Shown: piece after piece, positions 6,001 to 53,827 of the stretch
How positions within the stretch are numbered: position 1 is the stretch's first letter
Layout of the letters: the number at the start of each line of letters is the position of its first letter
NCBI GenBank assembly: GCA_000708835.1
Contig: DF237205.1
Location: forward strand, 1-64,000
Reading direction: 5' to 3'
DNA length: 64,000 nt
From: Klebsormidium nitens
Lineage: Eukaryota; Plantae; Klebsormidiophyceae
The notes under the pieces: generated by a model
What the model was told of the DNA's origin: nothing
Database searches by the model: none
What the model saw: only the letters and a program-made list of their open reading frames with translations
Position numbers and translations under genes: made by a program

Positions 6001-9000
6001 GCTGCCTAAACATGGTCGGATACAAAAAAAATATGTGACTTCTAGAATCAGTCCCAGATCAGAAGGTGGCACAGAGGGATCGAAAGTACGTCTTGTTGGC
6101 TTGATTATGGAGATCTGGGCATAGGCACTGACACCAGCCACCAATCTTAGCCTCTGCTTTGCTGAGCTTTGACGTCGGGGTTTGATATCGATTCTTTCGG
6201 AGGGGCACAAGGCTGGTCTTGGTGAATGGATGACTTCACGAGAATGGGCTTCAGTCAACGCACAGTTCGCCGCGTGGGCGATGGATACTCTGACATGCCC
6301 AACGTGCTGTTGCCGTCATAGCCTTTGACGCCGGCAGAGACTCTCCGATCTGTCTGCAGGAAAACGACAATATAGGCCTAACTTTGGGCTATTTCGTGGG
6401 CCGACTGACACGCGACGTTTGCAAAGAAAAAACGTTCGACAGTCCGAGTAAATACGTGAGGTCGACCTTCTTGATGCCTTGCCTGCCCTTAAAACTTAAA
6501 CGCTTGCAAACAGTACCCACGGTTGATGCTTGACCATTCAAATTACAATTGACGTGATCGGATGCAGAACGTAGACAAGGCCGGCCGGGCCAAGCCTGGC
6601 AAAAAGCATTGACTGAGACGAGGGAACGGCAAGTCAAAAGCGATACAAGTCTGGGCTATAACCGCGCAGCTTTTTTGATGAAGCCCAAATAAGGACGAGT
6701 GTTGTCGAAACCATAAACGAGTGTCCTCAAGAGCTCGTCATTAAGAACAAACTGACTACTAATAGCGATTCTTGTCAGCTGCGGCATCACGATGGACAAT
6801 ATTGGTACTCAAATGTACCGGACCTCGAAACCTCCTTGCGGGGGAAAAGGCTGAGCCTGAAGTTGAAGTAGTAAACCTTCTCAAGAGCTGTACAAAAGGA
6901 CAATGGCCTCAGCTCAGAGATGATGAACTCGCTTGGGTTTCTCACGCTACCCCAGCTGCCGCCGCACATCCTAGCCTTGAGCAACCTGATAATCATCACG
7001 AGTTGCAAGTGGCAAGAAGAGCACGAAGCAGAAAGAGCAAGCGCTCGTCAACCAGAGAGTTCGAGTCCATCAAGAGACTTCCGCGTGCTTTCAAACTCTA
7101 TTTCAGAGCACTATAATTTGACGGCTGTTCGTCTCTGCACTGCTCGAAAAGCGCGCACTGTCAACCGGAGCATTCTGCTCGGGCTAGCTATCCGTGGTCA
7201 ATACGGAAACCATGAGAAAGCGCCAGTCGTAAGAGCGTCTTCTGAGCCACTTTCCTGGATTGGGGGATGCCGATGTCGATCCAAAAGGGAATCAGCTTAT
7301 TCAATCAGGTTTTTGCGCTTTCGCAGTTCCCCGCATGTAGACCATGCCTTCTTCACTGCTTACATGGATATATTGACGTAAGATCAGACTACGAAGGCCA
7401 AGCTGCCAAAGAGTATTCAGCCTCTTTCGTCTGTTTCACCAATTATTTGATCACGGTCAGCCCCAGACTGCACCATAGTCACGCTGTCGAAAGTTCCAGA
7501 TGGCACTGTCGTCATATGCTCCACGTGCCCAAACCTCGAAACAGTAACGGATCGAAAGGTGCGATTACGAACACAGTTCTAGATCTAGTGGCATCACTAC
7601 CCAACAATCTTGAAGATATCTAGATCTGGGATAGACTCCATGCAAGACTCATGGGCTTCAGTGATCACAGCCAGCACGGAGATGCAAGATCCTTGAATCC
7701 AGAGACAGCAAAATTGATTGAAAGTTTCCGACCGCAGCAACCGGAAAAGACTCAGGGCGTTAAGTCAGCGGTGGGAAGCAAATCTTCTGTTAGCAAAGTC
7801 TACATGGTGGCAGTCAGTGCTCAAAGATTGAAAGCCCTGAAAGACGTAAGACGACGCTTTGGCTCCGTGACACCGTGACATGATCCGATGAGATATACCG
7901 TCTCAACCGTGTGAATCACAGCCTTTACCTCGTCATAGTTGGTATCATGTATTTGCAGTCAGAAGAGCACTCGACAGGTTCCAGCTGTCGACACTTTGAC
8001 TCCGAACCGCCAGCCTGCCTTCTCTAGTGGCTTCCAAGGCAAGCCGCTTGTCACGTTAGAAAAGAAGAGGTCTTGACTTTGATTGGCCGTTGATGCGGGA
8101 GTTTCAAAGAGAAGCGTAATCAGCTGCACAATTGACGTCAGGCGGGGAGTCAACCTTGGTTCCGCCAGGCGAGCTGCACCGGATTCGGCTTTCGTTGCCA
8201 CCATGGCCGAGTACGAAGGCACTGAGGACAAGGACGAATAACAGTGACTCGGAGAAGTCGAGACTACACTGCGGGTGTTTTTTGAGCAACTTGAACGGGC
8301 TTTAAAAACTGGCTGGGTCAGCTCCTTTGTAATCAGAGATTCATACTGGTCAAGAAAAACATTCCCTCTAGGCAACGTCGGCGAACCAACATCAGAAGTG
8401 GCTTCAGAAACGCTAGTTGCTCCCTTAGTCTGGGCATCTCTTTAACCCAACGTGCTATCGCCGTCACAGCCTTGACGTTCGAGGACTCTACAGACTGTTT
8501 ATGGGCGGAAGAAAAAGCGCAACCAACCAACCACCCACATTACGATCTGTGTGTCTCACCTTGCACCAGAAGCTTTTGCTCCTTTCGTTCTTCTCGCAGA
8601 CCGGCTATATCAGCGTCCAAGAAGATCACTGACTGGAACTCGGCCGTTGACAACGGTGTTTTCAAGGTAGTTCGATGCAAGCACAAAAACAGGGATACGC
8701 ACGGAAAACGAAAGACGAGCCTTTCGCTCCTCGCCGGGCAGCGAAAGGCGCACCTAGAGTGAACCACCTGTCGCATGCAGGTGCGAAAAGACGTGGGCTC
8801 CCACTCCGTATGCAATATTGACGGCTTAAATACTCCTCGAGCGCTTCAGCTAGCACCACCAAATGAATCAGCTTGGCAACTCCCCTGGATAAGAAAGTCG
8901 TGCCCGAGTCTATGCATGTTCTTTCTGCAAAAATCGAGAAGCGGCCCACTTGACAACACCAAGAGACGTTCTATGGGTTCATTTTAGCCACCACCTATTG

Positions 9001-35912: not shown

Positions 35913-38397
35913 CTGAACGAAAAGAGAAGAAGCGATCTAGAACTGAGTTCTCAATTACTCCCGTCTTGAAAAACATCTCAATGAAAGGGGAAATTGGGCA
36001 AGCATTTGTCCTACAAAATCAGAATTGGCATCTCCGTTGAACTTTAATTGCTTTTCCCGTGCTCCTGAAAACATCGTACCAATTGAATGGAAACTAAGGT
36101 GTGTATAGGATCTTGGGGCGAATCGAATTGCAGGCAACAGTGTCCAAACAATCCGCGACCCCACTGAAGGTTGCTTCCTGCCAGTAAAGATCAAGCTCTC
36201 CGGCTTTCTTTGCTTCCTTTCGAAAGGAAGTGCCAGTAGCGTGCGAAAGCCCGAAGAGAAGACCAGTGTCATTACGAGAGTTGTTCTTGATGCCCCTTCA
36301 ATTCAGTTCTGATAAGCAAAAGATCGGAAGCAACGAGCACATGACGAGGTAATCAGACATGACAAGTGAGTACAAGCGCATGACAAGGTAAGCACAAGCA
36401 CATAACAAGGTGATCAAGCACAAGCAGCACATGTGCTTACCCAGTAGTTGGAGCTCGAGTGTCCCTTGCTTTTCGCAATGGGCTTCACCACAGACGTCGC
36501 AGCTCGAGGTTTGGGGGCGCCGGTCTGACGGCTGATCCGCTTAGTCGGAGTCGTGTGCGTGATACCAAGAGCGGGGGAGATTGCCACGCTGATAGCTGCC
36601 GCCATCTTGTAAGAATTTGACATCGGTCTAGGGGAAATTTAATGCTTTTTGAGAAAGTTAGAATGAGTGCGTTAGCCAACCTCGATTGTGTGCAGTTCAA
36701 TTGCGATCAGGCAAGCTGCGCTACTAGTGCGCCTAGAGCCTGTGTGCTGACTGCATTAACGGCGCTGCTCTTGAGAACCAGGTATGCCAAATTACATCGA
36801 GGCAGTCAACGACATCCACCTAGCGCATGAGCGTGCCGGCCAAGCTTGTGATGACGTCAGCCGTTCTAAAAATTCCCGACGACCGAAGCCGATCGAGACT
36901 TAGAAGCCCCGCATGCACACAAGAAGCGGATGGCGACAAGAAATGGCCCCGACCAGGATCGACATCTGATCATTGCTTGACTCTGCCCCGCAATCGATGA
37001 TCTTGTTGCAGTTGTACGAGTAATGACGTACACGGAGTAACCTTCTCCCGCCGTCCTTGCTTGAGTGTGTAGCTACAGCGTGACTCGGTATTAAAACTGT
37101 ACTCCGGTGATTCTTAAGACAACTCTCCTTTGAGTTGTGAATTCGATCATGGGCGGCCTCAGACATGCTCATTCAATCCGAAATTTCGAAACGCAATTTC
37201 AGATGACAAGCGCATTGCGATGAAGACGTACTATCGGCTGGCTTACGCTCTGCAGCCGCCAGAAAACGAACTTGCCAATATGGGCTATTGCGAAACGTGG
37301 CATGTGTGGACGTGCAGTTGACCATGCGCGCCACTGCCTTGGAAATGTTATCGCGAATGCTTGGCTTGTCTGCAGTATGTCTTGCACTGTGGTCATCAGT
37401 CAGGGCGCGCCAGGCTTGACAATCATTACAGAGCTTCGCAAGCGGCCTGTATAACTTAGTAAGCATGCACGTGTATATTATTTTGACTGTCGATCAGAAC
37501 CACGGGGATGGTGCATGAGAAAGTAAGCGCCCAAGGCTGCGCCGACTTGGTTGGCAGCACGCATGCCAATGCAAATAAAACCGCTGTCTCTTTCCTAACG
37601 CCTAAGCTACGCAGCGAAGGCACCATCGGAAGCATGAGGCGCACTTGAGCTACTCAAGGCGGTATTTGTTCGATTCTGCAGTCCCTCTTAAAAGCAGAAG
37701 ATATCTTCTATTTTCAAAGAGAAATAACTGAACTTCGGAGAAATATCTTCCCGATCACAGAGCGCCCTTAAATACTTACAATATTGTGCATCGTAACCGG
37801 ATCGTGATACAAAGAAAGGTTCCATTCGTGTCGAAGACTCCGGTCAAGGACGTCTTGGCTCCTCTCCGGATCTACGGAACTAGCATGACTAACGTCCGCA
37901 ACAGCCAAGTATGGGTACGCTACTCTCACAATGGTCACACTGGCTGCAAAAGGAGAGGAAGAATCTTTCAGGTTCAGTGAAAGTTTGTCAGAAATAATCT
38001 TCAACGTTTTGCAGTATCACAAATGTAAGAGTAGATCTCCGGATGCTTTTGGCTTCACTGCTTCCCTGAGTCAGTCCCAAAGGCGCAGACTATTCATGTT
38101 CAATAGCACTCCACAGACCTCCCGACCACTCAAATGAGGAGATTGTCGAAGAGCCTGGCGCAAATGTTGCACCCGTCTGCAAAGGTGACCAAGGCAGCGC
38201 GAGAGTTTTATTGTGTTGCAACTGCTTATCTAATTAGATGCGTGCTTGCCTAAGATACAGATTGGGCTTGACAAGAATGAGGCGTCACAATCTAGGAAGT
38301 AATTCACATACTTTTCAGAGGCCCTTTGCAGAAAGCACCTTCTCGACCAGTGCAACCCGTTCTATCCTGTCCCTACCCTCGGACTCTTCACGGGGAA

Positions 38398-41300
38398 TCA
38401 ATCAGAGTCGCACTCACCCGCAAGGTATTGATAAACGTGATCGTACGGTTCCACCCTGATTGGAAGTTGAATATTAATCCACCTCAGTATACTCTCGTAG
38501 GTATCCTGGTGATAGATTGTGGCAAATGCGCCATACGTGAGCAGGTTTGCATTGTAGCAGCGAGCCCCCGTTGCGTCATAGACCCTCGTGCTGACGTCGT
38601 CTTGGATCCAGTTCCACGCGTCGAGAGACCACTCTGTTGCGCCCAGCAACAATACGCCGCCACTGCAAAAGCGAATCCTTGGGAGTGAGCCAAAACAAAA
38701 GACTCGGTCCCCATCTCCAAAAATTTAATTCAGGAGGCGTCAGTAGGAGATGTGCATACAGCTAGTACGAGGCTCAAAGAAATGCTCCCTAAATGTCAGC
38801 GAAAAAGATCAGATCAGTAAATTATCTGCAAGGTTGTTAACTTTGAATCTCATACGTGTGCGTTATAATAACTCGAAGAAAACTCGCCCTGCGGAAGCAG
38901 ATGAGCAACACGGTCAAATCATTGCGCACTCGGCCCGATCGCGAGATCGTTCTGGGACCTTATGTGCGCTAGATCTGATGTCAGGTCGGCTTCTTCTCGC
39001 AGAACATACTCTCAGTCAAGAGCTCAGACGAAGGTCTGACGCGACTTCAAAACAAAAACCTACCTGCCCCCTCTTCTAAGAAAATTGGAGCAACGCGCGC
39101 TCGTCGATAAGAGCTCCTTCAACCGCTCGCCAAACTGCTTATGAAGTAGGGCATCGTCCTCTAGTACGAGGATTGCGGGCAACCGCAACTCTTGCGCGTG
39201 TAAGAACAACTCTCGCATGGATGCTAGGACGCCCAGTTCACCGGGCTTTAGCTTTTTGGCACCTGCATTAGCGAATTAGGTCCTGGTTTGTAGCTCGCTA
39301 TGTTGTGACTGATTGAACGACACACAAATTCGATCGATAACAATTTCGGCCTAGCCGAAACAAAGCGAGATCCAACGCTCTACATCCTTCTCATAGATAT
39401 GACTGTTGAATCCTTCGCACTAAAGACTGCGCTTGCACTCTAGCTGCAACAGCTGATTGATGCAATATGTTTTTCTTGACATTGCCAATAACAGCTGTGC
39501 TGGACATCAAGTCCTTTTACAGGCTGACGTCCTACATCGCATCATCCGCGACTTCAGAAGATCTCGTCTGACAGAAAGCAACCCGCTTACTGGAGAAGCA
39601 CAGGGTTCAGTTGACAGAGATTGGAGCCTGGAAAAGTGATGCTTGATGCTCAGAGAATCCAATGTCGAGCTGCTGACTGGCCTAAGATCTTCCAAGTAGT
39701 CGTTTGAAATTGCTCATACGTAACTCCAAGAGCTCAACGAATGCTCACCGAGGTCCGTCTTGTTCGCGTCTTGGAAAACTTCGGACCCGTTTACAGCGGT
39801 CCATGCCACAGCATTGAAACCGTGAAGCCGGCAGTTCTGAGCGAGACCTTCCCAGCGCCCCTGCAGAACGAAAATAAATAGCCGTTAGTATTCGATCGTT
39901 GAAACAGATTGTCTCAAGATGATAGTGGAGTAGCTTCTGGATTTGCAATAAATAAGCAGTTAAGACACAGCAGACTCCGACAAGCTTTTAGGGTATCTGA
40001 AGTGATGCTTCAAGACCTGTACCGTAACAGTCTTCCCCATCGAGATGATTGCCGCAGCTTTCAGATCTTAATGCTGGATCAAAATGGTCTCGGATCGGAA
40101 GGGAGAAACTTCAAGAAGCACTCAAAACAGACTTGTTCCACAACCGGGTTTTGCGACCTTAAGTCAATGTCCTTGAATGACCAGCACAAACCATTTTGAG
40201 CATTCCATTGCTCAGATTGCAATCAAGAAGAAACAAATTAAGCAGACTGCAAGAGAAGCACATTGAAGAGGTGCTGTGGTTGGAGCACATTGTCTCTACC
40301 TGTCCTGTTAGAGTCAGGATGAAAACGCTCAGCCTTTTCAGAAACTGCTCCGGTGACACGACGGCGTCTTCGGGAAGGCACTCCCGAAGTTCTTTTGGAA
40401 GTTCCTTCCGGAAATAAGGCCCGTACCCGTGTTCCATCATCCATCGTTCCGTGGTCAGAGTTGGGTTGTTGTAGCAATGAGCTGAACTTGGAATAGAGAC
40501 TGCTGAGGTTTGAGAAGCAAGCGGTGGATCCAGCATTACTGGCTTGTCGACGGCAAGAGTATGGGCTTCTATGTGGATTCGCAAACGCGTGAATCCTTTC
40601 CTGTATATCACGTCTTCCAGCTGCTCTGCGACTAAGGAGCTAGGTTGGAAAGAGGCGGTCACGTCTTCAAGGGTGTGAATTTTGTTCCAGTCTTGCAGCG
40701 CTCCGATCACTTCAACTTGTAGGCCTCCTTTCTGAGCTGCCAAGAACACTGTTCGACCTTCCGTAATCTGACGCTTGGCAGCGGTAAGAACTGTCTGCAC
40801 CAAGGATGCCGAACCTCCATCTGACGCGGAACTTGGAATCGATCTGACAACGACTTTGACTGCGTCGTAGTAACCAACTTTCTTCCTGACCGACTCGTAA
40901 AACTGGATCAACTTGTGTGACGTCGTCAGCGCGACAGCTTCTTTCTCATTTCTGAACCCGTAAGGAACGCCTTATAGGAGGTCGATCCCCTCATTGCCGA
41001 AGCCTTGACAGAACGCTTCGACCGCTTCTCCGAGCATCGGACGGTCTGAGTCATTCGAAGCAAAGCGCCGAATAAGAACGCGTGCTTCCCCTAACTCTGC
41101 CTTCGACAAATAGCCAGTGTCCATGAAAGCCCCCTCATCGCCTACTCCGACATACTCGGCGGGCCACTGCACGACTCTCGTCCACTCGGCAGAGTCGCTC
41201 TCGATCGCGCCAAGACGCGCGCTCGCTCTTTGCACATCGAAAAGCTGATGAATGGACACGTGTCCTCCGTCTCCATCTGGAACCAGGGCCGGCATCACAA

Positions 41301-44300
41301 AGATACGTCGGAGCACACGTGCCTCACGTAAAGCACACGTGAGGGCCAGCCTTAGCGCCTTATACCCGCCACGCAAAGCAATAGTTTCAACGCCGTCCCA
41401 ATGTAAGTACCTGCCAAGGAGAAGGATAGGGCTTGAGCATGGGGATATTGGTCTTGTCAGCAGGAAGTGGTTTTCATGTTGAAAATCCCGACTCGGTTTT
41501 CAAGGGATGCAAGGTTGGCCCCTGAAAATCGCCCTAGCTTGTATCAAAAGCTGTTTGCTGGAGCGTAAGAGAATCGATGCTCGTTGATCAAACACTCAGC
41601 TTCTGCTTTCCCTCGGCTGCAGAAAGGAGCTGCTAGGAGGTGATATGCAATGAGGCCTCAGATTATCTCGTCTTCCTCGAACCTGTAGAGCAGCTTGTCA
41701 GCGGGAATGCATGCGGGGGTGTGAAATTGGAGGATCAGAGCGCAGCTGCCAGCTCCAAATATCACCACCTCAGAACCGGTTGCACACTTCACCGACTTGT
41801 TGTTCGCTCTCGGAACTTGCAGGGTTTCAGAGTCCTTCGCAACGACCTCGGGGCAACTTTTCACATCCATGACTTAGACCAGATGTTCTGATAGGGTTTT
41901 TGCAAGTTATGTAGCAATCAAGACGACCCGAGTCGTGATGGGTCGACGCGAAAGGGATTGCTCACCTCCGTTGAGCTTTCGCAGCTTCGACCTGCGTGCG
42001 AACAGGCTCCATGTGGTTTGGCAGAGACCGAAGTCCGCGCAGCTTCACCGGGTGCAAAGCGATGGCGTTCAGATGCACCGGCTCCAAGACCATCGGTAAC
42101 AGGATCTGCCGGTCGACGCTCCAAGCGCTCTTGAAGCGGGCCTTCATCTGATCCTCCGAAAATGGTCTGGAACCGCAAGCCACGCCCGCGTGCTTGGTAA
42201 CGCAGCGCCCCACTTCGACGTTAGAGTGCCAGCTAGACCACTCGACGGCGCACTGACTGATGTGCGGTCCCATTTTCTGAAGCGCAACTCTGTTGAGGAC
42301 GTAGGCAGGTCCGCCGACGCAGTACGGAAGGAGCTCCCCATGCCTGGCAAGGAAAGAAGAATGGTGCTCAGTGTCATCGATCTCGCCTTGACTTCCTCCG
42401 AAAGTGGGTACGGGTCATAACGTTCGACGTCTGAACATGTTTGCTGCCACGAGATTCTCGGTGCGACATTCCGGGGTTATACGAAAGACCGTTGTCAGGC
42501 AACCCGCACGTATCACAGACTGTGGTGATTGTCAAACAAAGATTGGTATCAGCTCAAGTCTTCGAATGTTCCGATGCGTCTAGTCGCAGACCAGGCCTGA
42601 CAAAATCCGCCCATCTCAGTATCAGCGAAGCATCTTTGAAGTCGCGAATTTAACACGCCGACATCCGTCGATCAGGCATATGGTGCCCGTGGTCATACCA
42701 GAGAAGCTTATTTGCTTTCTTTAGCTTCATCAGCCGCTAGGAAGAATTCAGTATGTTACGAGACTCAGAGAAAAAAACGAAAGGCAAAGGCAAAGGCCTG
42801 CACGAGCATCTAGCAAAAGATGTTAAAAGTTGGCATCAGGTCAGATATCGATCCCAGTGATTGGGTGATATAATCATACCACATGCGGATGCAAATCCGG
42901 GGTTGAAAATGGTTGCGCTCTTTCCTGCTGTCTCGGTCCAATCGCTGCTTTTGGTAAGCTAGACAAAAGCGCGATAGCGGATCCTACGACCCTCTTGACT
43001 TCGAAAAAGCAACTCACTTTCCCTTCTCAACATTGAGAGGTCGGCCTTGCGGGTCGAATTTCGCCCCGGTTGTTGGCCCGCCAAGGTACAAAGGTCCCGC
43101 GTTTCTTTCCGACAGTTCGAAGCCTCGTAAGAAGTCCCTCAAGCGCTCGAAGTCGACATAGGCGTCATCGTCAAGGTGCATGAACCTGCACGCAACAGGC
43201 AGAGGGGTACCATGCCGGTTCCAAGCAATAATTTCAAGTAGAAGTCTTAAGCTACGAGACGAAATCAAACTGCTCGGAGAGTCGCGAGAGGATCGAGCTA
43301 TGATATCAACGTGGAAAAAAGATGCTCTTTCTTGATGTGTTACCTGATCTGTGTTTTGTGCAAGGGCTCTCATGCCTGGCTAAGCAACCTAGTTAAATCA
43401 ATGACGTTGCCTCCGAGCAACGACAGGCCAAGGCTTCTATCTGCAGCAGATCCTTTGCCAATCGGTTTAAGAATCGACTCCTCGAACCCCGTTACGGTAT
43501 GCAGATTAGAAGCAGAGTTCTCACCAGTCATACTCGGTGGCATGATGCTCGTACATATACTGCCACATTGCGAGATCTTTCAGACGGGGCGGATACCCGT
43601 CCCTGCAGAGAAAACGAATCTGTCTGATAGAGAGATTGCCAAAAGCCTACAACCAGACAGTGATAAAGTCGGATCTCCGAAATGCTGTTGGCAACCACCT
43701 CACATTCACAGAATGTCTGTGCTCTGAATCCGCTCACTGACCAGATTTGGTGGCCGGGAGAGCGGTGAAAGTAGCAACCTGTAACCCCTAACAAATTTCT
43801 CTCAATCTGGAAGAGAGACTTGCTTTGACACGCAATGATCAGACGACCAGGAATCGTAGGACAAGGCACGTTTCTCAACAGTGAAGAATGGCCTAAACCT
43901 TTGTACCTCTGTTCATCTTGCCGTGCTACAGGTTGTTACAAGGTCTGGCCCAACCACTTTGATACCTTTGCCTTTGCTGATCCAACTTTAGAATACTTGG
44001 GAGGGTCACCAGCACGCACAGGTTAAAAGTAGAATAAGCTGGGACGGTTTTATCGTTTGCACACTGTTTCGTTCTTCTACGAAAGTGCTTAAACCAGAAA
44101 GCCCTGGCACGAAGTCAGCTTTGAGCTGCGGCTTCCTGGTCCTTAGTCAGACATCTCTGTGTTGTCACCTTTTTCTCCAGAGCAAACTTCCATCCCCAAA
44201 GCAACCTTAAGTCTCTCGTAAGATAAGAACACACTTACTCCACATCAAGCCACACAAGCGGAAGGCCTCCGTACTCAGCCGCACGTGCTTCTGCAACGTC

Positions 44301-45935
44301 CTTGCTGGTGCTGTTCCCAACGAAGAGGATCATTTTGGCCTTGTCACCCAGGCTCGCAAACAGAGGCACAACTCTGGAGCGGAGCTGGTGATGACTAGCC
44401 TTTGAGAGGACGCCGACCAGTAAAGATGGGCCTGCTGAAAAGGCAGACTCCTTCTGCTGCATCGCCTTGAATCTTGAGCACCTGTGGCAAGGAAAGATAC
44501 TGAGCAACAGCCGGAATCGTCATGGAAATGCATCTACTGCTATGATCTAGTGTGATACTCCTCGTGCTGAGGTTCTCCTCTTTGCCTGTACAGGATACCT
44601 CATACCTGATCCAATCTTTACAGCTGCCAATGCTCTCTATCCTTTCTGAAAGGAAATGAAAAGCAATCACTGGCAAGCCCTTTCAAAATTCCTGGTAGCT
44701 CTTGTCGCCAAGCAAAGGCTAGAAATAGCTCGCATGGTCTGATTGTCCATCCGCCCGGCCCAGTATGTGACAGGTTACTTACCATTACTATGTAAAGAGC
44801 TAGTAATAGTGGCAGATTAAATGCCCCTGGCGAGAAGCATTTCATTGGGTAGCCTAGGAGGAGGGAAGGTCTTGAGCATTGCATCTTGTCCAAAGCGGGT
44901 GATGCCAGTCAAGAAGCGGATAAGAGTACCTGACCAGGCGCCAGATGGACAATGAAAGGACCACCTTCAATGGAGGCAGTACAAATAATAAGAAGAGACT
45001 TTGAAGTGCAGCAGTATCACCAGCCGCAATATCCAACTGCAGAGATGCACCGGACCTCAGGAATTGTCTGCCTTAAAACCAGCTTTTACACTAACAGCTA
45101 CGACCTGGTGAAGTTGACGCAGCGGCAAGTGGAAGCTTCCAGTAAGCAAAGATTTCCCGCAGGAAATGAGCGGTGAGTGGTACACTTGAAGATATGCACA
45201 GGCCCAGCGACACCATGACCAAAAGGGGGTATAAGATATAACCTGCTGATTGAGAAGGTCGGCTGGGGAGTGCACTTGCAGGTACAGTGTATCAAAACCA
45301 AATGACAGTCTTTCATGTCCTGCATTCCTGAACTCCAGACCAGACCAGAATTGACTCCCAAGAGTCCCAAGGGGCACCGTGTACAGTGCGCCTATGCTGT
45401 GCAGCTCTTCTAGCTGACGGGTCTGTTTCCTATCAATTGAGACAAGGTGAAGCTGCAGCGAGCTGGAAAAGCCTTCACCCGTGAATTGCAGGTGGATGGC
45501 AATGGAGTCTCCCAGGAGGTCGCCAGTGTTAAAAATGAGCCTGCATTGCGCTGGAATATTAAAACTGGAGTTGATGTTCCAGTCTGACGAGAGTGTCTCT
45601 ATTGCCGGTGCCAAGCTGGAGGTCCCATTTGCTAGGAACCAGCTCCAATCAGCAGGCAAGGGGCACCCGCTTTTGAATATCCAGTGCTCACTGGGATTCC
45701 GCTCTGAGAAAAGAGATTCACAATCTGGTTGCTGGCTGCTGATTGCTTGGGAGAGGTTGGGCGCTTCGTTGGTGAGCTGGGGCGTCTGCGCGGGTCTCAG
45801 CTGCAAATGTACCAGCGAGAGGCCAACACATGAAGCCAACAAGAGCAGGATCTTTATCAGCAGCCTAGAGGAGCAGCCGTCAAATGCGGACGCCCCGTTT
45901 CTACGCCCCATGCTTGCTACTCTGACAGCATCCAC
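38398..45935 (-). CDS. Multi-domain type II membrane glycosyltransferase: GT31 (chondroitin synthase/Fringe-like) + SUB1/O-fucosyltransferase-like + GT25; one in-frame TAA at 40974-40972
   Basis: Exons 45935-45243, 44964-44930, 44481-44239, 43602-43525, 43185-43018, 42343-41966, 41410-40300, 39860-39749, 39262-39064 and 38662-38398 sum to 3282 nt with matching phases. GT31 motifs: DGYPPRLK, WFMHLDDD, YCVGGPAYVL, NVEVGRC. SUB1-like motifs: LTCALREARVLRRIFVM, YYDAVK, EGRTVFLA. GT25 motifs: VFILTL..GRW, AVNG, LKPGELGVLAS, ILVLEDD, TYGAFA, PYDH. The 35-nt micro-exon and the 41966-41410 junction are the least certain parts. Confidence 0.78.
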
Positions 45936-48788: not shown

Positions 48789-51700
48789 ATGGGGAGGGTA
48801 CTGCATCCCACGGGACTGCAGCTTGCGCTTCTCCTGCCGCTGATATTCTCCATACTAGTTCTGTTCCACACAACCAGCTCTCGCACCCCGTTCTGCCTGC
48901 TGCGTAAATGCACGATTGAGACAGCAAAAGATAGCCTCCGGAGTTCGCCGCGGAAAGTAGTAACTGACGGCAACAGCATTAGGGTTTTCAGCGACGGGCG
49001 CCTTTCGGATGGGTGGTTTGCGGACCTGCAAGACCTGCGGGGGACTGCGCGGAAGCCTGCGGAACTGGGGGGCTGGACAGAGGGAAAAGGGTTTGGAACG
49101 GGGTTTGGAACAGGGTTTGGAAACGAGAGCGCGGACTCTAGTGAGCTGTCAGGATTCCAGCTGTCAGGAGGTGCCCGGCTGTGGCTCAAAAGCAATGTCG
49201 CGTTTGCGACTCCACGCACGATCAGAATTGAGGCATTGGGAACCGAGGCGGGAAGTCTGGAGCTGACACTGCTTACGCTCGACGGGGGGCACGAGCACTC
49301 TCAAAATTTCAATGTATCAAGTGTTGCTGGGGAATCTGGGAGTATGCTTCTTGTGGCGGATCTTCAAGGGGCCCAGTTTTTGCTGTGGCAGTCAGTTGAG
49401 GTGGGGAACACTGGGACAGGCACGCTCTTTCTGAGGAGTGTCCAGATTGCCTACCCCAGCTCGAGTGAGCTGCTAAAAGAGCAGGTGGGTCAAACACTTT
49501 CAATTTCTCAGATGCTGGAAGAACTTATGGGACAGAGGTCGCCACGTTGAGAAGGGTTCAAATGAATGCTGCCCTCAGCTGTGTCAGTCAATCAGCCTGG
49601 GAGGGACGAAGCTCCCTTGCGTCAAGGAAAGGGTTCGCAATTGATGATGGGAGTCCTCTGAGTGGTTCGTGAGTGTGAAAGGGCCAAAACAGATTGTTCT
49701 GAGACGGTGGATGGTCCATCCTCATGTATGAGGAGCCAATCAGACCCCAAAGGATTTATTATTTGGTAAACTGGCTTAGAGTAGGGGAAGATTGCAAGGA
49801 GGAGTGGGCACAAGTAAGGCTGACTTTTGCTGGGACAAGCAACTCATATCTATGCAAGGAAACCTGAGCTGATTTGATGCTTATGAGAATGTAAAGACTT
49901 GAGGTGGACATTTGACACCCCCTTGGAGCTGGATTATAAGCTCAGTGCCCGCCTGTCTGTCAATCAATCAGCACCAAAGTCGAGGAGGGAATGTAATCTT
50001 GCAAAGACGTGCGGATTCAAATGGCAGCAGGAGGTCAGCTCCTTTTACGAACTCGCTGAAGGCTTGTAACAACGTACCACTTCCGCGATCCTCCTGAGGA
50101 AGGTGACTCCTCAAGAACACTTTGATTAGTTTGGAATTCACTTCGGATACCATCTTTCCCCTAAACCGGACGGCAATCGATGGAATAAGCTGACTCACTG
50201 GACTCGTCTCCAATCACAGCTGGATCGAATCCAAGCCACGTCCCCTGCTCTCCTCTCACACTGGACAGCAAGCACAGGAAAGGCGCACTCACTCGACTCG
50301 TTTCCCATTCGCAGGTGGGTAGAATTAGAGCTGCGTCACCCGCTTTTCTCTCAAACCGGACGGTAAGAGTCGGAGGCCCCTCAATTCTCGTCTCCCTCTT
50401 GTCACTCGCCGAAGAGAGTCACTTTCAAAGACGACTGGTGCCGTTGATTTCGGTGCTCGCCCCAGAAGTGGATCTTCTCGTGTTCGTGGGAAACAACACC
50501 GGAGAAGCGCAGGCGGCGGCGCTCGCTGAAAAGTATGGGGGTCTTCCGTTGAGATGGAGGAATGTGAGGTGGGCGGGAGTATATTAAATGTTGTGACAAA
50601 GAATTGGAATAAGAGGAGGTGTCTGATGAAATGAATTCGTCGGAGTGTGTCGAAGAGCCAGGATTGCAGAACTGTGGTCTAAAAAGGAAGTATCTGCTGG
50701 ACTAGAGGCCTGGTTGTCTTTGACATGAGGGGTGAATTTGAGTCAAAAGGGGTCCCTTACGAACAGAAGTGCCCGAGTCGGATCCTTTTTCTAAGGTGCC
50801 GTTGTGAAACAAGCCATGATTAAACTCCTCGGCAATGGATTATCGCGAACCGCGCCGCAAGCGACAAGCTACACCATCTCTTTTGGGAAAAGGTCGCCAT
50901 CGAAAGCATCACAGCGCCGTCTTATCGCCTCTTGAACTGCAAATGCTTTGATGGGTTCAAGCCCGGCTGTTTGTGGAAATCTCCAGCCGACCTTTGCGTT
51001 CGTGTCCCAAGGTCGTCTACTTCGTTGGAGGATAGCGCCGTCAAAGATTGCAATCCTCTGCCGGAGACGGGTTATCTTACCCGCGGATGTGGTGGGCGCG
51101 ATTGGGGCCCAGCACGCAAACTTCAGGACTCGGTTTGGTGTTACCCTTCATGGTGCTAGCAGTCGGTTAGTCTCGTTTCCGGAGTGATAACCAGCCGGAA
51201 CAAATTGGGGCGCTCGTTTAGAGGGTTTCTCAGAGACGGCCTGTGTTGACGCTCTGTGTTGCTTGCAGTGACGCGTACCCTCCTCGCTTAAAGGAATTTG
51301 ACAGCTGGCAGTACGTTTACGAGAACCACGTGGACGATTACGAGTGGTGAGCAGAGCGTCTCGTGGTCACCTCCCGGCTCTTGCCGCTATTTTCTCGCCA
51401 CTGCTAGTTAGTCGGAAGTAGACAAGTAACATTAGACTCGTCAAAAATGAAATACCAGAATTCTTTTTGGGAAGCAGGTCTGAGCAGGACGGGCTGGACT
51501 CGAGCCCTAAGGCCCTGACACCGCTGACATCATTATCCCTCTCTTTGAGATTGAACCGGGTACGGCTGTCCGCAGGTACAAGACTGGTAACATTGGAGAC
51601 TCAGTTTTAAAAGTCCCACGTCCGTTGCTTACTCCGAAGTCTAGGTGTTCGCAAACTTGCCTGGTCGCGTTGTTCGTCCGAGCGAGCTGCAACAAAGAGG

Positions 51701-53827
51701 CTGCAAAGAGGGTCGCTCAAACTCCGCTTCTCGGTAGCGCCCCAAATACCGAACGTGTGCTTCCAAGGTAAAAGCTTCTGGTTCCTTCCCTCAGACAGCG
51801 TATCGGTGGAAAGCTCGGTACGGTAAGCAATCCCCTAGTTTTTCACCGTGAAAGAGCTCGTCGTCTTGCAAAAGGCCGCTTCCCTTTTTGCACTCGACCA
51901 CTACGTATGCGAACGTTAAGAGTCTAGTGGCAACTGAGGCTGCATATATTGCTTAACGAGGTCAAACGTCGGTGCGCCACTTTCTGTATCTACCTACAGC
52001 GCGCACAGTCGGAATCACTTCCGGCGCCTTTTTGAATGCACCCGTATTCGGGTTCTTTTGAGTCCTTTCCTGTTTGTTCTTCCTTCCTGTAGCGTAAGGG
52101 CTGCTACACCGTCGAAATCCTCTCAATCTAATCGTCTCATTTGAAACGACTTCCTGTTTCTAAACCTGCCACGTGGCGCTCTCAGGTTCCTCCACATGGA
52201 CGACGACACCTTCCTGAACGTGGCCAATCTGAGGGCGTTTCTCCAGAGCGTCCCCACTCTAGTTCGAAACACGTTCGAGCCCCTCTACATCGGCTCGCCG
52301 GGTTTTGGGGCGACGACCCACTTCCACGGCCGCCCGCTCGACCTTCCCGTTGGGAGGTGGGCTGTTCCGTTTCCGGTCTTTCCGTTCCCGGTCATTTCGT
52401 TTTTGCGTCTAGCAGCAATGGCTCAGCTCACCAACGTAGGCGACTGAAGCCTTTCAGGTAATTGCGACAGCCGGACGTCTCTGTCAGCCGAAAACTGCGC
52501 TTGTTCTCAAGACGAAATAGAGACGACTCTGCTCAACAGTCGCTCGCTCGATTCAAGTATTGGAAGGTGGGCCGTTCCGTTTCCACTCATTCCGTTCCAG
52601 CAATGCTCGACCGCCGGACTTTGCAACAGAGAAACGGATCGAAGGTTTTGCGCCCTGATCCGCCGGGTCGGTTCAAAAACTCAAGACAAAGACGCAAAAC
52701 CAGAACAGGGAAAATAATGCTCTGGTATCGCTTGGAAAACTTAAAGCAAGCACAGCTTGCTTCTACTCAGAAACGCATAATTTAGTAGGTACTTCGTTTC
52801 GTCGACTGACTGGTACCGCGACACATTCGTAAAGCGAAACAAGGAGATGGGTCCGGAAACAATGCACGTCTATTCAGACACGCAGCTCCGGCAGCCTTTT
52901 CTTCCGGTTTCACACTTTAAGGCCAACGGAGCGATCACCGAGTACGTCCCAGTAGTTAGTTTCTTTTTATCTGAACAAATGCACCACGAAGAACTTGGAC
53001 TCCTGGCAGACCTCCAGAACAGTTCTTCCGCTAACCTGGCCTTTGCGCATGGTTTATGCTGTCCATGAAGGCCGCCTTTCACAGGGTTTTTTGGCGGTTA
53101 CTTATAGTCGGTTTCGGGCTGGTTCGAAGCTGGTTCATTGTCCAATGACCAGACTCGAGCAGTAACCAGGTTTTCAACATGGCTATGACGCGGTTATCGG
53201 TCAAAGAACCAGACTGAAGTTCGTGTTATCGAACCTGGTTAGCAGCCAAACCATCCTGTGTTTGTATGTGACGGGGGTTTGTAGCCAAGGGGGATACCCA
53301 AACATCGGCTGCGAGTCCGCGTTCTCCCTAGGTCACTTCCTGATGTTTATCACAGCCTTCTCCAGCTTGTTTTAGAAGCCGTGCCGTCGGCCAGCAGGTA
53401 TGCGCCGTCGATTCTGCTCACTCTTCCTTGCAGCGACGGTCGGATTTTGCCGTTCTGTATGGGCGGCCCGGGGTACCTTCTAAACCGTCCGGCGCTGACG
53501 CGGCTAGGTCCGCACTTCGACACGTGTCTCCGGGAGTGGTCAAGCGAGCTTTCGGACACCGAATTCGGACGCTGCGTATATAAGCACGTGGGCATATCCT
53601 GCGCGCTTGGAAATAGCACGACGCAGCAATTACGAGGGGGGTTCAGGCACCTGTACGACAAACCGTTTGCGCGCGCGACGAATCTGCAGCACTTTGCGCT
53701 GTTGTCGAAAGCCGTTACGTTGCACTCGATAAAGTTGGAAGACGACGCGACGATGGCGAATCACATGGAGGTCGTAAAGCGACTTGCAGAAAACGTCCAA
53801 ATCAGGGGCCCCGCTAACTTGAAGTAA
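48789..53827 (+). CDS. Type II membrane GT31 glycosyltransferase (chondroitin synthase/Fringe-like, ~530 aa), paralog of the N-terminal half of the 38398-45935 gene
   Basis: Exons 48789-49484, 50315-50568, 51269-51346, 52186-52356 and 53434-53827 total 1593 nt in frame. Features: N-terminal TM (LALLLPLIFSILVLF), DAYPPRLK, YEWFLHMDDD, PLYIG, FCMGGPGYLL, DTEFGRC, VTLHSIK. Confidence 0.85.

Follow-up and report, generated by a model that had tools for sequence, protein, structure and literature searches.

Could a single membrane-anchored chain carry three glycosyltransferase modules, and is such a protein still made from the gene that appears to encode it in the alga Klebsormidium nitens? These questions are raised by a locus on contig DF237205.1 (assembly GCA_000708835.1), of which we analyzed positions 1 to 64,000 of the forward strand, a stretch of 64,000 nucleotides (nt) referred to here as the window. 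An earlier note, made from the letters of this stretch, had joined ten exons at 38398-45935 into one open chain with a transmembrane anchor, a stem, a GT31 domain, a domain resembling plant SUB1 and the O-fucosyltransferases, and a GT25 domain. Here, we provide evidence that the three modules lie on one spliced message, that the same arrangement exists in divergent relatives, and that the middle module of the window copy is interrupted by an in-frame stop codon. We consider it probable that this copy is a recently disabled or truncated paralog and not a working three-module chain.

One spliced message carries all three modules

Stop-free frames and RNA-derived contigs together define a transcribed and spliced multi-exon gene on the minus strand, extending from approximately 45911 to 37768. 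RNA contigs from four runs (X1-X4, three studies) lie over 38390-44389, and seven runs contain part of the stretch; in the two best runs a fraction of 0.43 of the sampled words is present, which is close to the exon fraction. The splicing of these contigs, with introns bounded by CT..AC on the plus strand, shows that they derive from RNA. They tile the gene from 44389 to 38418 and beyond and reveal introns at 44238-43603, 43524-43186, 43017-42344, 41965-41411, 40299-39861, 39748-39263 and 39063-38663, all with GT..AG ends and strong acceptors. The nine introns of the complete model measure 339-761 nt.

The earlier note had singled out the two inter-module junctions as the place where its fusion should be checked, and both are bridged. 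Contigs of X1 and X2 span the junction between the GT31 and middle modules, 41966/41410, reaching 180 nt to one side and 322-1066 nt to the other, and a 13-letter loose end in X3 agrees there with the end of exon 5. Contigs of X1, X2 and X4 cross the junction between the middle and GT25 modules, 40300/39860, their shorter arms measuring 30-43 nt. These joints, together with the conservation of the architecture in three divergent loci described below, support one message carrying all three modules. Transcripts that use a short intron at 41965-41889 and end near 41830, the case that the note had set against its own model, find no support, as RNA depth in 41590-41789 is zero in the four runs. Intron 5 also contains a 71-codon open frame (41661-41873, minus strand), which has zero RNA depth in four runs and is probably no exon.

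Both ends of the gene differ from those originally drawn. A loose end at 38418, present in all four runs, has a 30-letter consensus with a unique placement at 37914-37943. Exon 9 therefore ends at the donor 38418/38417 (GTGAGT), where the transcript splices into a tenth exon at 37943-37768, and the TGA at 38398 that had been taken as the 3' end is intronic. At the other end, position 45935 is occupied by a GTG and the first ATG is at 45911.

The architecture is conserved in divergent relatives

Relatives of the gene were found as exon-sized open reading frames on eukaryote-like contigs from two Joint Genome Institute (JGI) metagenomes and two Logan runs, and the fetched contigs were searched exon by exon with tblastn. 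The full set of ten exons is found in colinear order in L001/L002 (59-85% identity), and nine of the ten in L003/L004 (37-77%), where exon 7 was recovered in a corrected frame. In L005, exons 2-6 and 8-10 are colinear (26-62%) and an equivalent of exon 1 was recovered by alignment; two further loci, L006 and L007, end at contig edges and are partial. L001/L002, L003/L004 and L005 agree with the window gene in the places and phases of their introns, the exception being the exon 3/4 intron of L005. At 8411-8653 of that locus, the most divergent of the paralogs, exons 3 and 4 run on in frame with no intron between them. The colinear exons in three loci therefore indicate that the architecture is conserved in at least three diverged subfamilies and is not a chance juxtaposition.

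These data bear on a model in which the locus consists of two or three separate genes with promoters of their own, the apparent fusion being an artifact of read-through transcription. Consistent with such a model, the RNA contigs abut at 42142/42143 and at approximately 40342/40343, and none covers all modules. However, the junction 41966/41410 is bridged in two runs and 40300/39860 in three, the places and phases of the junction introns are conserved in L001, L003 and L005, the exon for the middle module closes with the first strand of the GT25 module, and no in-frame ATG occurs for approximately 180 codons after the premature stop codon in that exon. Separate genes are thus extremely unlikely, and we return to a single gene with three modules.

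An exhaustive HMMER search with the second half of exon 6 against 1.84 billion representatives returned only four 50%-identity clusters, a profile search against 5.8 billion proteins returned only six family proteins, and a search with the N-terminal region of the paralog P0003 returned family members only. The three-module family is known so far only from this alga and a few related contigs. Since there are only four middle-module clusters among the 1.84 billion representatives, the family appears to have arisen within a single algal lineage near the ancestors of land plants. L001, L003 and L005 share two samples, JGI 3300060284 and 3300060285, which suggests that one related alga in these samples carries all three subfamilies.

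A stop codon interrupts the window copy

Exon 6, which encodes the middle module, is continuous in RNA: an X1 contig extends over 40343-41408, and X2 and X3 contigs are likewise uninterrupted, with no gaps and no differing letters. The contigs of all three runs include an in-frame TAA (40974-40972), which falls in the linker that connects the two lobes of this module. L001 has GAA (Glu) as the corresponding codon; the stretch LLEGVPYG of L001 and P0005 appears in the window as LL-stop-GVPYG, and the homologs code colinearly across this position. The GAA codon and the colinear homologs therefore argue for a single G-to-T nonsense substitution in the window copy. Under each of the in-frame alternatives for the exon 1/2 joint discussed below, this TAA is the only internal stop, at codon 653, 666 or 668 of 1,120-1,135. 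The single open chain of the earlier note does not survive this result, as the TAA interrupts an exon that is unspliced in RNA and the small intron that had been assumed there was not seen.

Could such an intron nonetheless remove the stop and restore the chain? There are 26 in-frame GT..AG pairs that span the TAA. However, X1, X2 and X3 contigs are unspliced through it, the homologs are colinear and coding on both sides of it, and the intron would have to be 39-210 nt long when the modelled introns measure several hundred. We rejected this candidate and regard an intact chain produced in this manner as very improbable.

The ratio of nonsynonymous to synonymous substitution rates (dN/dS) provides an indication of when the stop arose. 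In the comparison with L001, at a dS of approximately 0.87, this ratio is 0.19 before the TAA and 0.20 after it. The GT31 core (0.05) and the GT25 module (0.08-0.16) have the lowest values, the stem (0.28) and the middle module's second lobe (0.32) the highest. The equal ratios on either side of the TAA therefore indicate that purifying selection acted on the downstream modules during almost the whole divergence and that the nonsense change is recent.

The joint between exons 1 and 2 may hold another lesion. The exon 1 donor 45243/45242, in phase 0 after LLNQQ, lies at the same place in L001, L003 and L005, all four copies ending in a glutamine codon followed by GT, and the acceptor 44482/44481 (after CACAG) is likewise conserved in the relatives. 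In a comparison of DNA and frames, joining 45243 to 44481 puts the window copy off by +1, with a stop at codon 252; the shift is due to an extra T at approximately 44471-44470, where the window has AAGATTC and L001 has AAGGTC. Judged from these letters, exon 2 may be frameshifted in the window copy. An acceptor at 44466/44465, or donors at 45220/45219 or 45214/45213, would keep the frame open. The conserved donor itself (45242-45237) reads GTTATA, with a pyrimidine at +3 where the eight RNA-verified donors all have a purine, which might be another mark of decay or reflect a shifted splice site. A protein search with exon 5 returned three relatives, none of them from the window.

In the scenario that we favor, the G-to-T change would convert the Glu codon to TAA and translation would end after approximately 652-667 residues. 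The product would comprise the anchor, the stem, the GT31 module and half of the middle module, and we infer its fate: the most likely states of the window copy are a dying paralog or a truncated GT31-only protein.

Several points weigh against the copy being disabled or truncated. Approximately 468 codons downstream of the TAA are without further lesion and the four downstream introns are still spliced, which also fits a gene in use through readthrough of the stop. The message is present, although it would be an expected target of nonsense-mediated decay. The frameshift is read from DNA alone, and three in-frame splice alternatives are available at the exon 1/2 joint. Finally, the TAA may be specific to a strain, since all runs possibly come from one cultured strain.

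Some of these points lead to a model in which the full three-module protein is still made, the TAA being read through or recoded so that one message yields both a short GT31 form and a long form. The intact and correctly spliced downstream exons and the undiminished constraint on them (the equal dN/dS) favor this model, and the TAA lies in a variable linker and not in a conserved core. Yet the stop and its following base, TAAG, are the same as at the gene's true terminator, the relatives have a plain Glu codon at this position, and we know of no readthrough signal of this kind, although we made no search for one. We therefore consider continued synthesis of the long form distinctly unlikely and retain the model of a recently interrupted paralog.

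Anchor, stem and the two flanking modules

What would the uninterrupted protein look like? All ten exons are on the minus strand. Exon 1 (45243-45911), defined by its open frame and by alignment to L001, L003 and L005, encodes a basic cytosolic tail, a signal-anchor read from the sequence as approximately 20 hydrophobic residues (residues 17-36, approximately 45863-45804), and the stem. The short tail and single N-terminal anchor are those of a type II membrane protein, with the catalytic part predicted to lie in the lumen. The stem aligns with those of L001, L003 and L005 with 28 invariant columns, and its DWSW motif is at 45650-45639, the first tryptophan being invariant in four homologs.

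The GT31 module occupies exons 2-5. Exon 2 (44239-44481), in which the module starts, was placed by frame comparison with L001, L003 and L005 and by counting phases, and its donor at 44238 is RNA-verified. Exon 3 (43525-43602) has RNA joints on both sides and is 81% identical to that of L001. Exon 4 (43018-43185), also delimited by RNA joints, contains the DDD motif (HLDDDAY) at 43172-43164, has a Fringe-like Pfam match (PF02434) with an E-value of 0.0016 (18.3 bits, below the cut-off of 21), and weakly matches CHSY3. Exon 5 (41966-42343), the C-terminal part of the module, is joined to exon 6 by the X1 and X2 contigs. It matches Pfam CHGN (PF05679) with 29.7 bits against a cut-off of 23, and the closest solved chain is the N-domain of chondroitin sulfate synthase 3 (9q8z_B, E 5.1e-10). 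These Pfam scores are those of single exons.

The GT25 module begins with a strand (FILTLTGQ) at the 3' end of exon 6 and continues in exon 7 (39749-39860), which has RNA joints and follows exon 6 in phase 0. Its core is exon 8 (39064-39262), with GELGVLAS and with LEDD at 39164-39153, followed by exon 9 (38418-38662) and by exon 10 (37768-37943), which encodes the C-terminus, ends with the TAA at 37770-37768 and is 85% identical to exon 10 of L001. Exon 8 alone matches PF01755 (E 1.2e-7, 32.2 bits against a cut-off of 24), and the orthologous exon 8 of L001/L002 has a precomputed match to the same family. Exons 7, 9 and 10 taken alone have no Pfam match, and exons 9 and 10 have no PDB match either. 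The two aspartates of LEDD (D35 and D36; FDDD in L005) are invariant in four homologs, and the EDD residues are invariant or near-invariant. PDB matches at the same acidic motif, to GT25 proteins and COLGALT1, are weak (E 0.4-0.6). The anchor, the DWSW-containing stem, the GT31 domain with its DDD motif and the GT25 domain recognized by GELG..S and LEDD, all proposed by the earlier note, are thus borne out.

The middle module resembles fucosyltransferases in predicted fold

Exon 6 (40300-41410) is unspliced, as judged by RNA contigs and by the homologs P0001-P0006, and the identity of the module that it encodes is less readily established. Pfam searches with pieces of the window copy and with L001, P0002 and P0004, at E-values up to 10, gave no match, including to PF10250, PF05830, PF19745 and PF03254, and a PDB sequence-profile search with the middle module gave no credible match (one was spurious). 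P0003 alone matches DUF7075 (PF23272), and only faintly (E 0.075), its 12.7 bits falling short of the cut-off of 23. Language-model look-alikes of two paralogs belong to the O-FucT, FUT8, NodZ and XG_FTase clan, with scores of 0.83 and 0.92, and serve as leads only. There is also an N-terminal motif of the type GG...LNRT-V-P, which we take to be common to the middle module and SUB1-type proteins.

More informative was an AlphaFold2 model of P0003, with a mean predicted local distance difference test score (pLDDT) of 54, a predicted template-modeling score (pTM) of 0.52 and 137 residues at a pLDDT of 70-90. When this model was compared with 48,161 PDB chains by a method other than Foldseek, the top six were all members of the GT-B fucosyltransferase superfamily, with 205-232 residues aligned: POFUT2 (Z 11.2), C. 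elegans POFUT2 (10.6), POFUT1 (8.9), Arabidopsis FUT1 (8.5), NodZ (8.1) and FUT8 (7.1). The chains that followed were generic GT-B enzymes with Z of 6.0 and below. Foldseek itself matched P0003 to POFUT1 at E 1.5e-3, and shape matches in the ESM Atlas were to DUF7075/DUF7074 clusters from streptophytes and to O-FucT, with template-modeling (TM) scores of 0.47-0.49. Counting against this assignment, an AlphaFold2 model of exon 6 of L001, the closest intact relative, built from 8 sequences had a pLDDT of 41 and was unusable, so that the fold is read on a paralog approximately 27% identical to the window module and modeled with the modest mean confidence given above. The SUB1 and O-fucosyltransferase likeness proposed by the note is supported for the fold, as seen in the P0003 model and in the DUF7075 matches, and does not extend to the Pfam profiles of these families. 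With this qualification all three modules can be assigned by profile or structure, the middle one through the fold of P0003.

The first strand of the C-terminal lobe offers a view of the catalytic signature. In a register set by eye, residues 205-212 of P0003, YDSVRIDF, correspond to YDAVKVVV in the window, and the HxR position of fucosyltransferases reads S-V-R, A-V-K or V-V-K. In the same register, the histidine is absent in all members, the arginine is kept only in the P0003/P0004/P0006 subfamily, and the window copy, L001 and P0002 have lysine. If this register is right, the sequences suggest that the middle module may not be a canonical fucosyltransferase.

A stand-alone neighbor

A neighboring gene on the plus strand (48789-53827) is arranged head-to-head with the fusion gene, their starts approximately 2.9 kb apart. 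It has the same anchor, stem and GT31 exon structure, with equivalents of exons 2-5 that are 39-56% identical, Fringe and CHGN Pfam matches, and HMDDDTF in place of HLDDDAY. No exons of fucosyltransferase-like or GT25 type were found 3' of its GT31 part within the window, and its frame ends right after GT31. Its stem has a faint CUB match (E 0.17) that is not evidence of fold. Judged by its sequence, this gene looks like a free-standing version of the first two fusion parts.

The neighbor provides a precedent for a model in which the truncated anchor-stem-GT31 product of the window copy is functional, the gene having reverted to a two-part form and everything beyond the TAA having become a long 3' untranslated region. 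Such a reversion would yield the anchor, stem and GT31 module that the neighbor, alike in exon structure and devoid of downstream modules, encodes, and the GT31 exons are indeed the most constrained of the fusion gene (dN/dS 0.05-0.18). However, with four exon junctions lying more than 50 nt beyond the stop, the message should be subject to decay, the 145-residue stub of a half-domain would probably misfold, and the conserved exon 2 acceptor, if used, breaks the frame before GT31. A functional truncated product is therefore unlikely in our view. The broader reading, a paralog recently disabled or truncated by the nonsense change, is the one we carry forward.

Proposed function and known systems

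How the intact relatives work can be envisioned from their modules. They would be type II membrane proteins, predicted to reside in the Golgi, in which the GT31 module (GT-A, DDD) and the GT25 module (GT-A, EDD) would each transfer a sugar from a uridine diphosphate (UDP)-sugar, with inversion, to a luminal glycan or glycoprotein. The middle GT-B module could add a third sugar or could be a non-catalytic lobe for acceptor binding or spacing. A bolder version would make the chain a lineage-restricted, single-protein assembly line of three enzymes. In it the middle module would be active with lysine or arginine in place of HxR, and all three modules would together build a defined trisaccharide or a repeating unit on a glycoprotein of the cell wall or mucilage. 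The long form would arise from the window copy by readthrough of the TAA, so that short and long isoforms coexist. We think this combination decidedly improbable.

Multi-module glycosyltransferases are of interest because they show which sugar-adding steps are physically coupled, and here the coupling would occur in a lineage near the ancestors of land plants, where the chemistry of cell-wall glycans is of interest. The three-module family also provides a natural test case for the question of whether SUB1-type folds act as enzymes or as scaffolds. The interruption of the window copy calls for caution, and functional work belongs on an intact paralog or relative.

In the literature searched we found no description of a chain that combines GT31, a fucosyltransferase fold and GT25, or of GT25 in this alga. 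Each of its parts has known counterparts. From a 2012 analysis came the prediction that SUB1 (At4g08810) and its SUL relatives are GT-B proteins within the fucosyltransferase superfamily and retain HxR (PMC3522684). The middle module of the alga resembles SUB1 and DUF7075 proteins in predicted fold only, with P0003 below the Pfam cut-off, and SUB1 proteins stand alone, unfused to other modules. COLGALT1 and bacterial GT25 enzymes belong to the same PF01755 family as the third module and share its acidic EDD motif. However, COLGALT1 pairs GT25 with a second GT-A-like domain, whereas the algal family pairs it with GT31 and a GT-B lobe.

Two known systems resemble the chain as a whole. The chlorovirus PBCV-1 protein A111/114R contains three putative domains, a galactosyltransferase, a xylosyltransferase and a fucosyltransferase, in one protein (PMC7826918). 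Like the algal family, it has three transferase-type modules of approximately 300 residues, one of them fucosyltransferase-like, and it has been proposed to add successive sugars to one glycan. It differs in being viral and cytoplasmic, in having no membrane anchor, and in consisting of other domain families with no detectable sequence relation, and the middle module of the alga may be without the usual catalytic signature. The other is chondroitin sulfate synthase, a two-module transferase (PMC12748766, PMC13389171). CHSY1 and CHSY3 (PDB 9q8z, 9o4g), which combine a GT31-like N-domain with GT7, are likewise type II Golgi proteins with several transferase modules per chain. The likeness shows no evidence of reaching to polymerase activity or heterodimer partners. 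In place of GT7, the algal family joins GT31 to a POFUT-like GT-B module and GT25, and thus brings together three modules where the chondroitin synthases have two.

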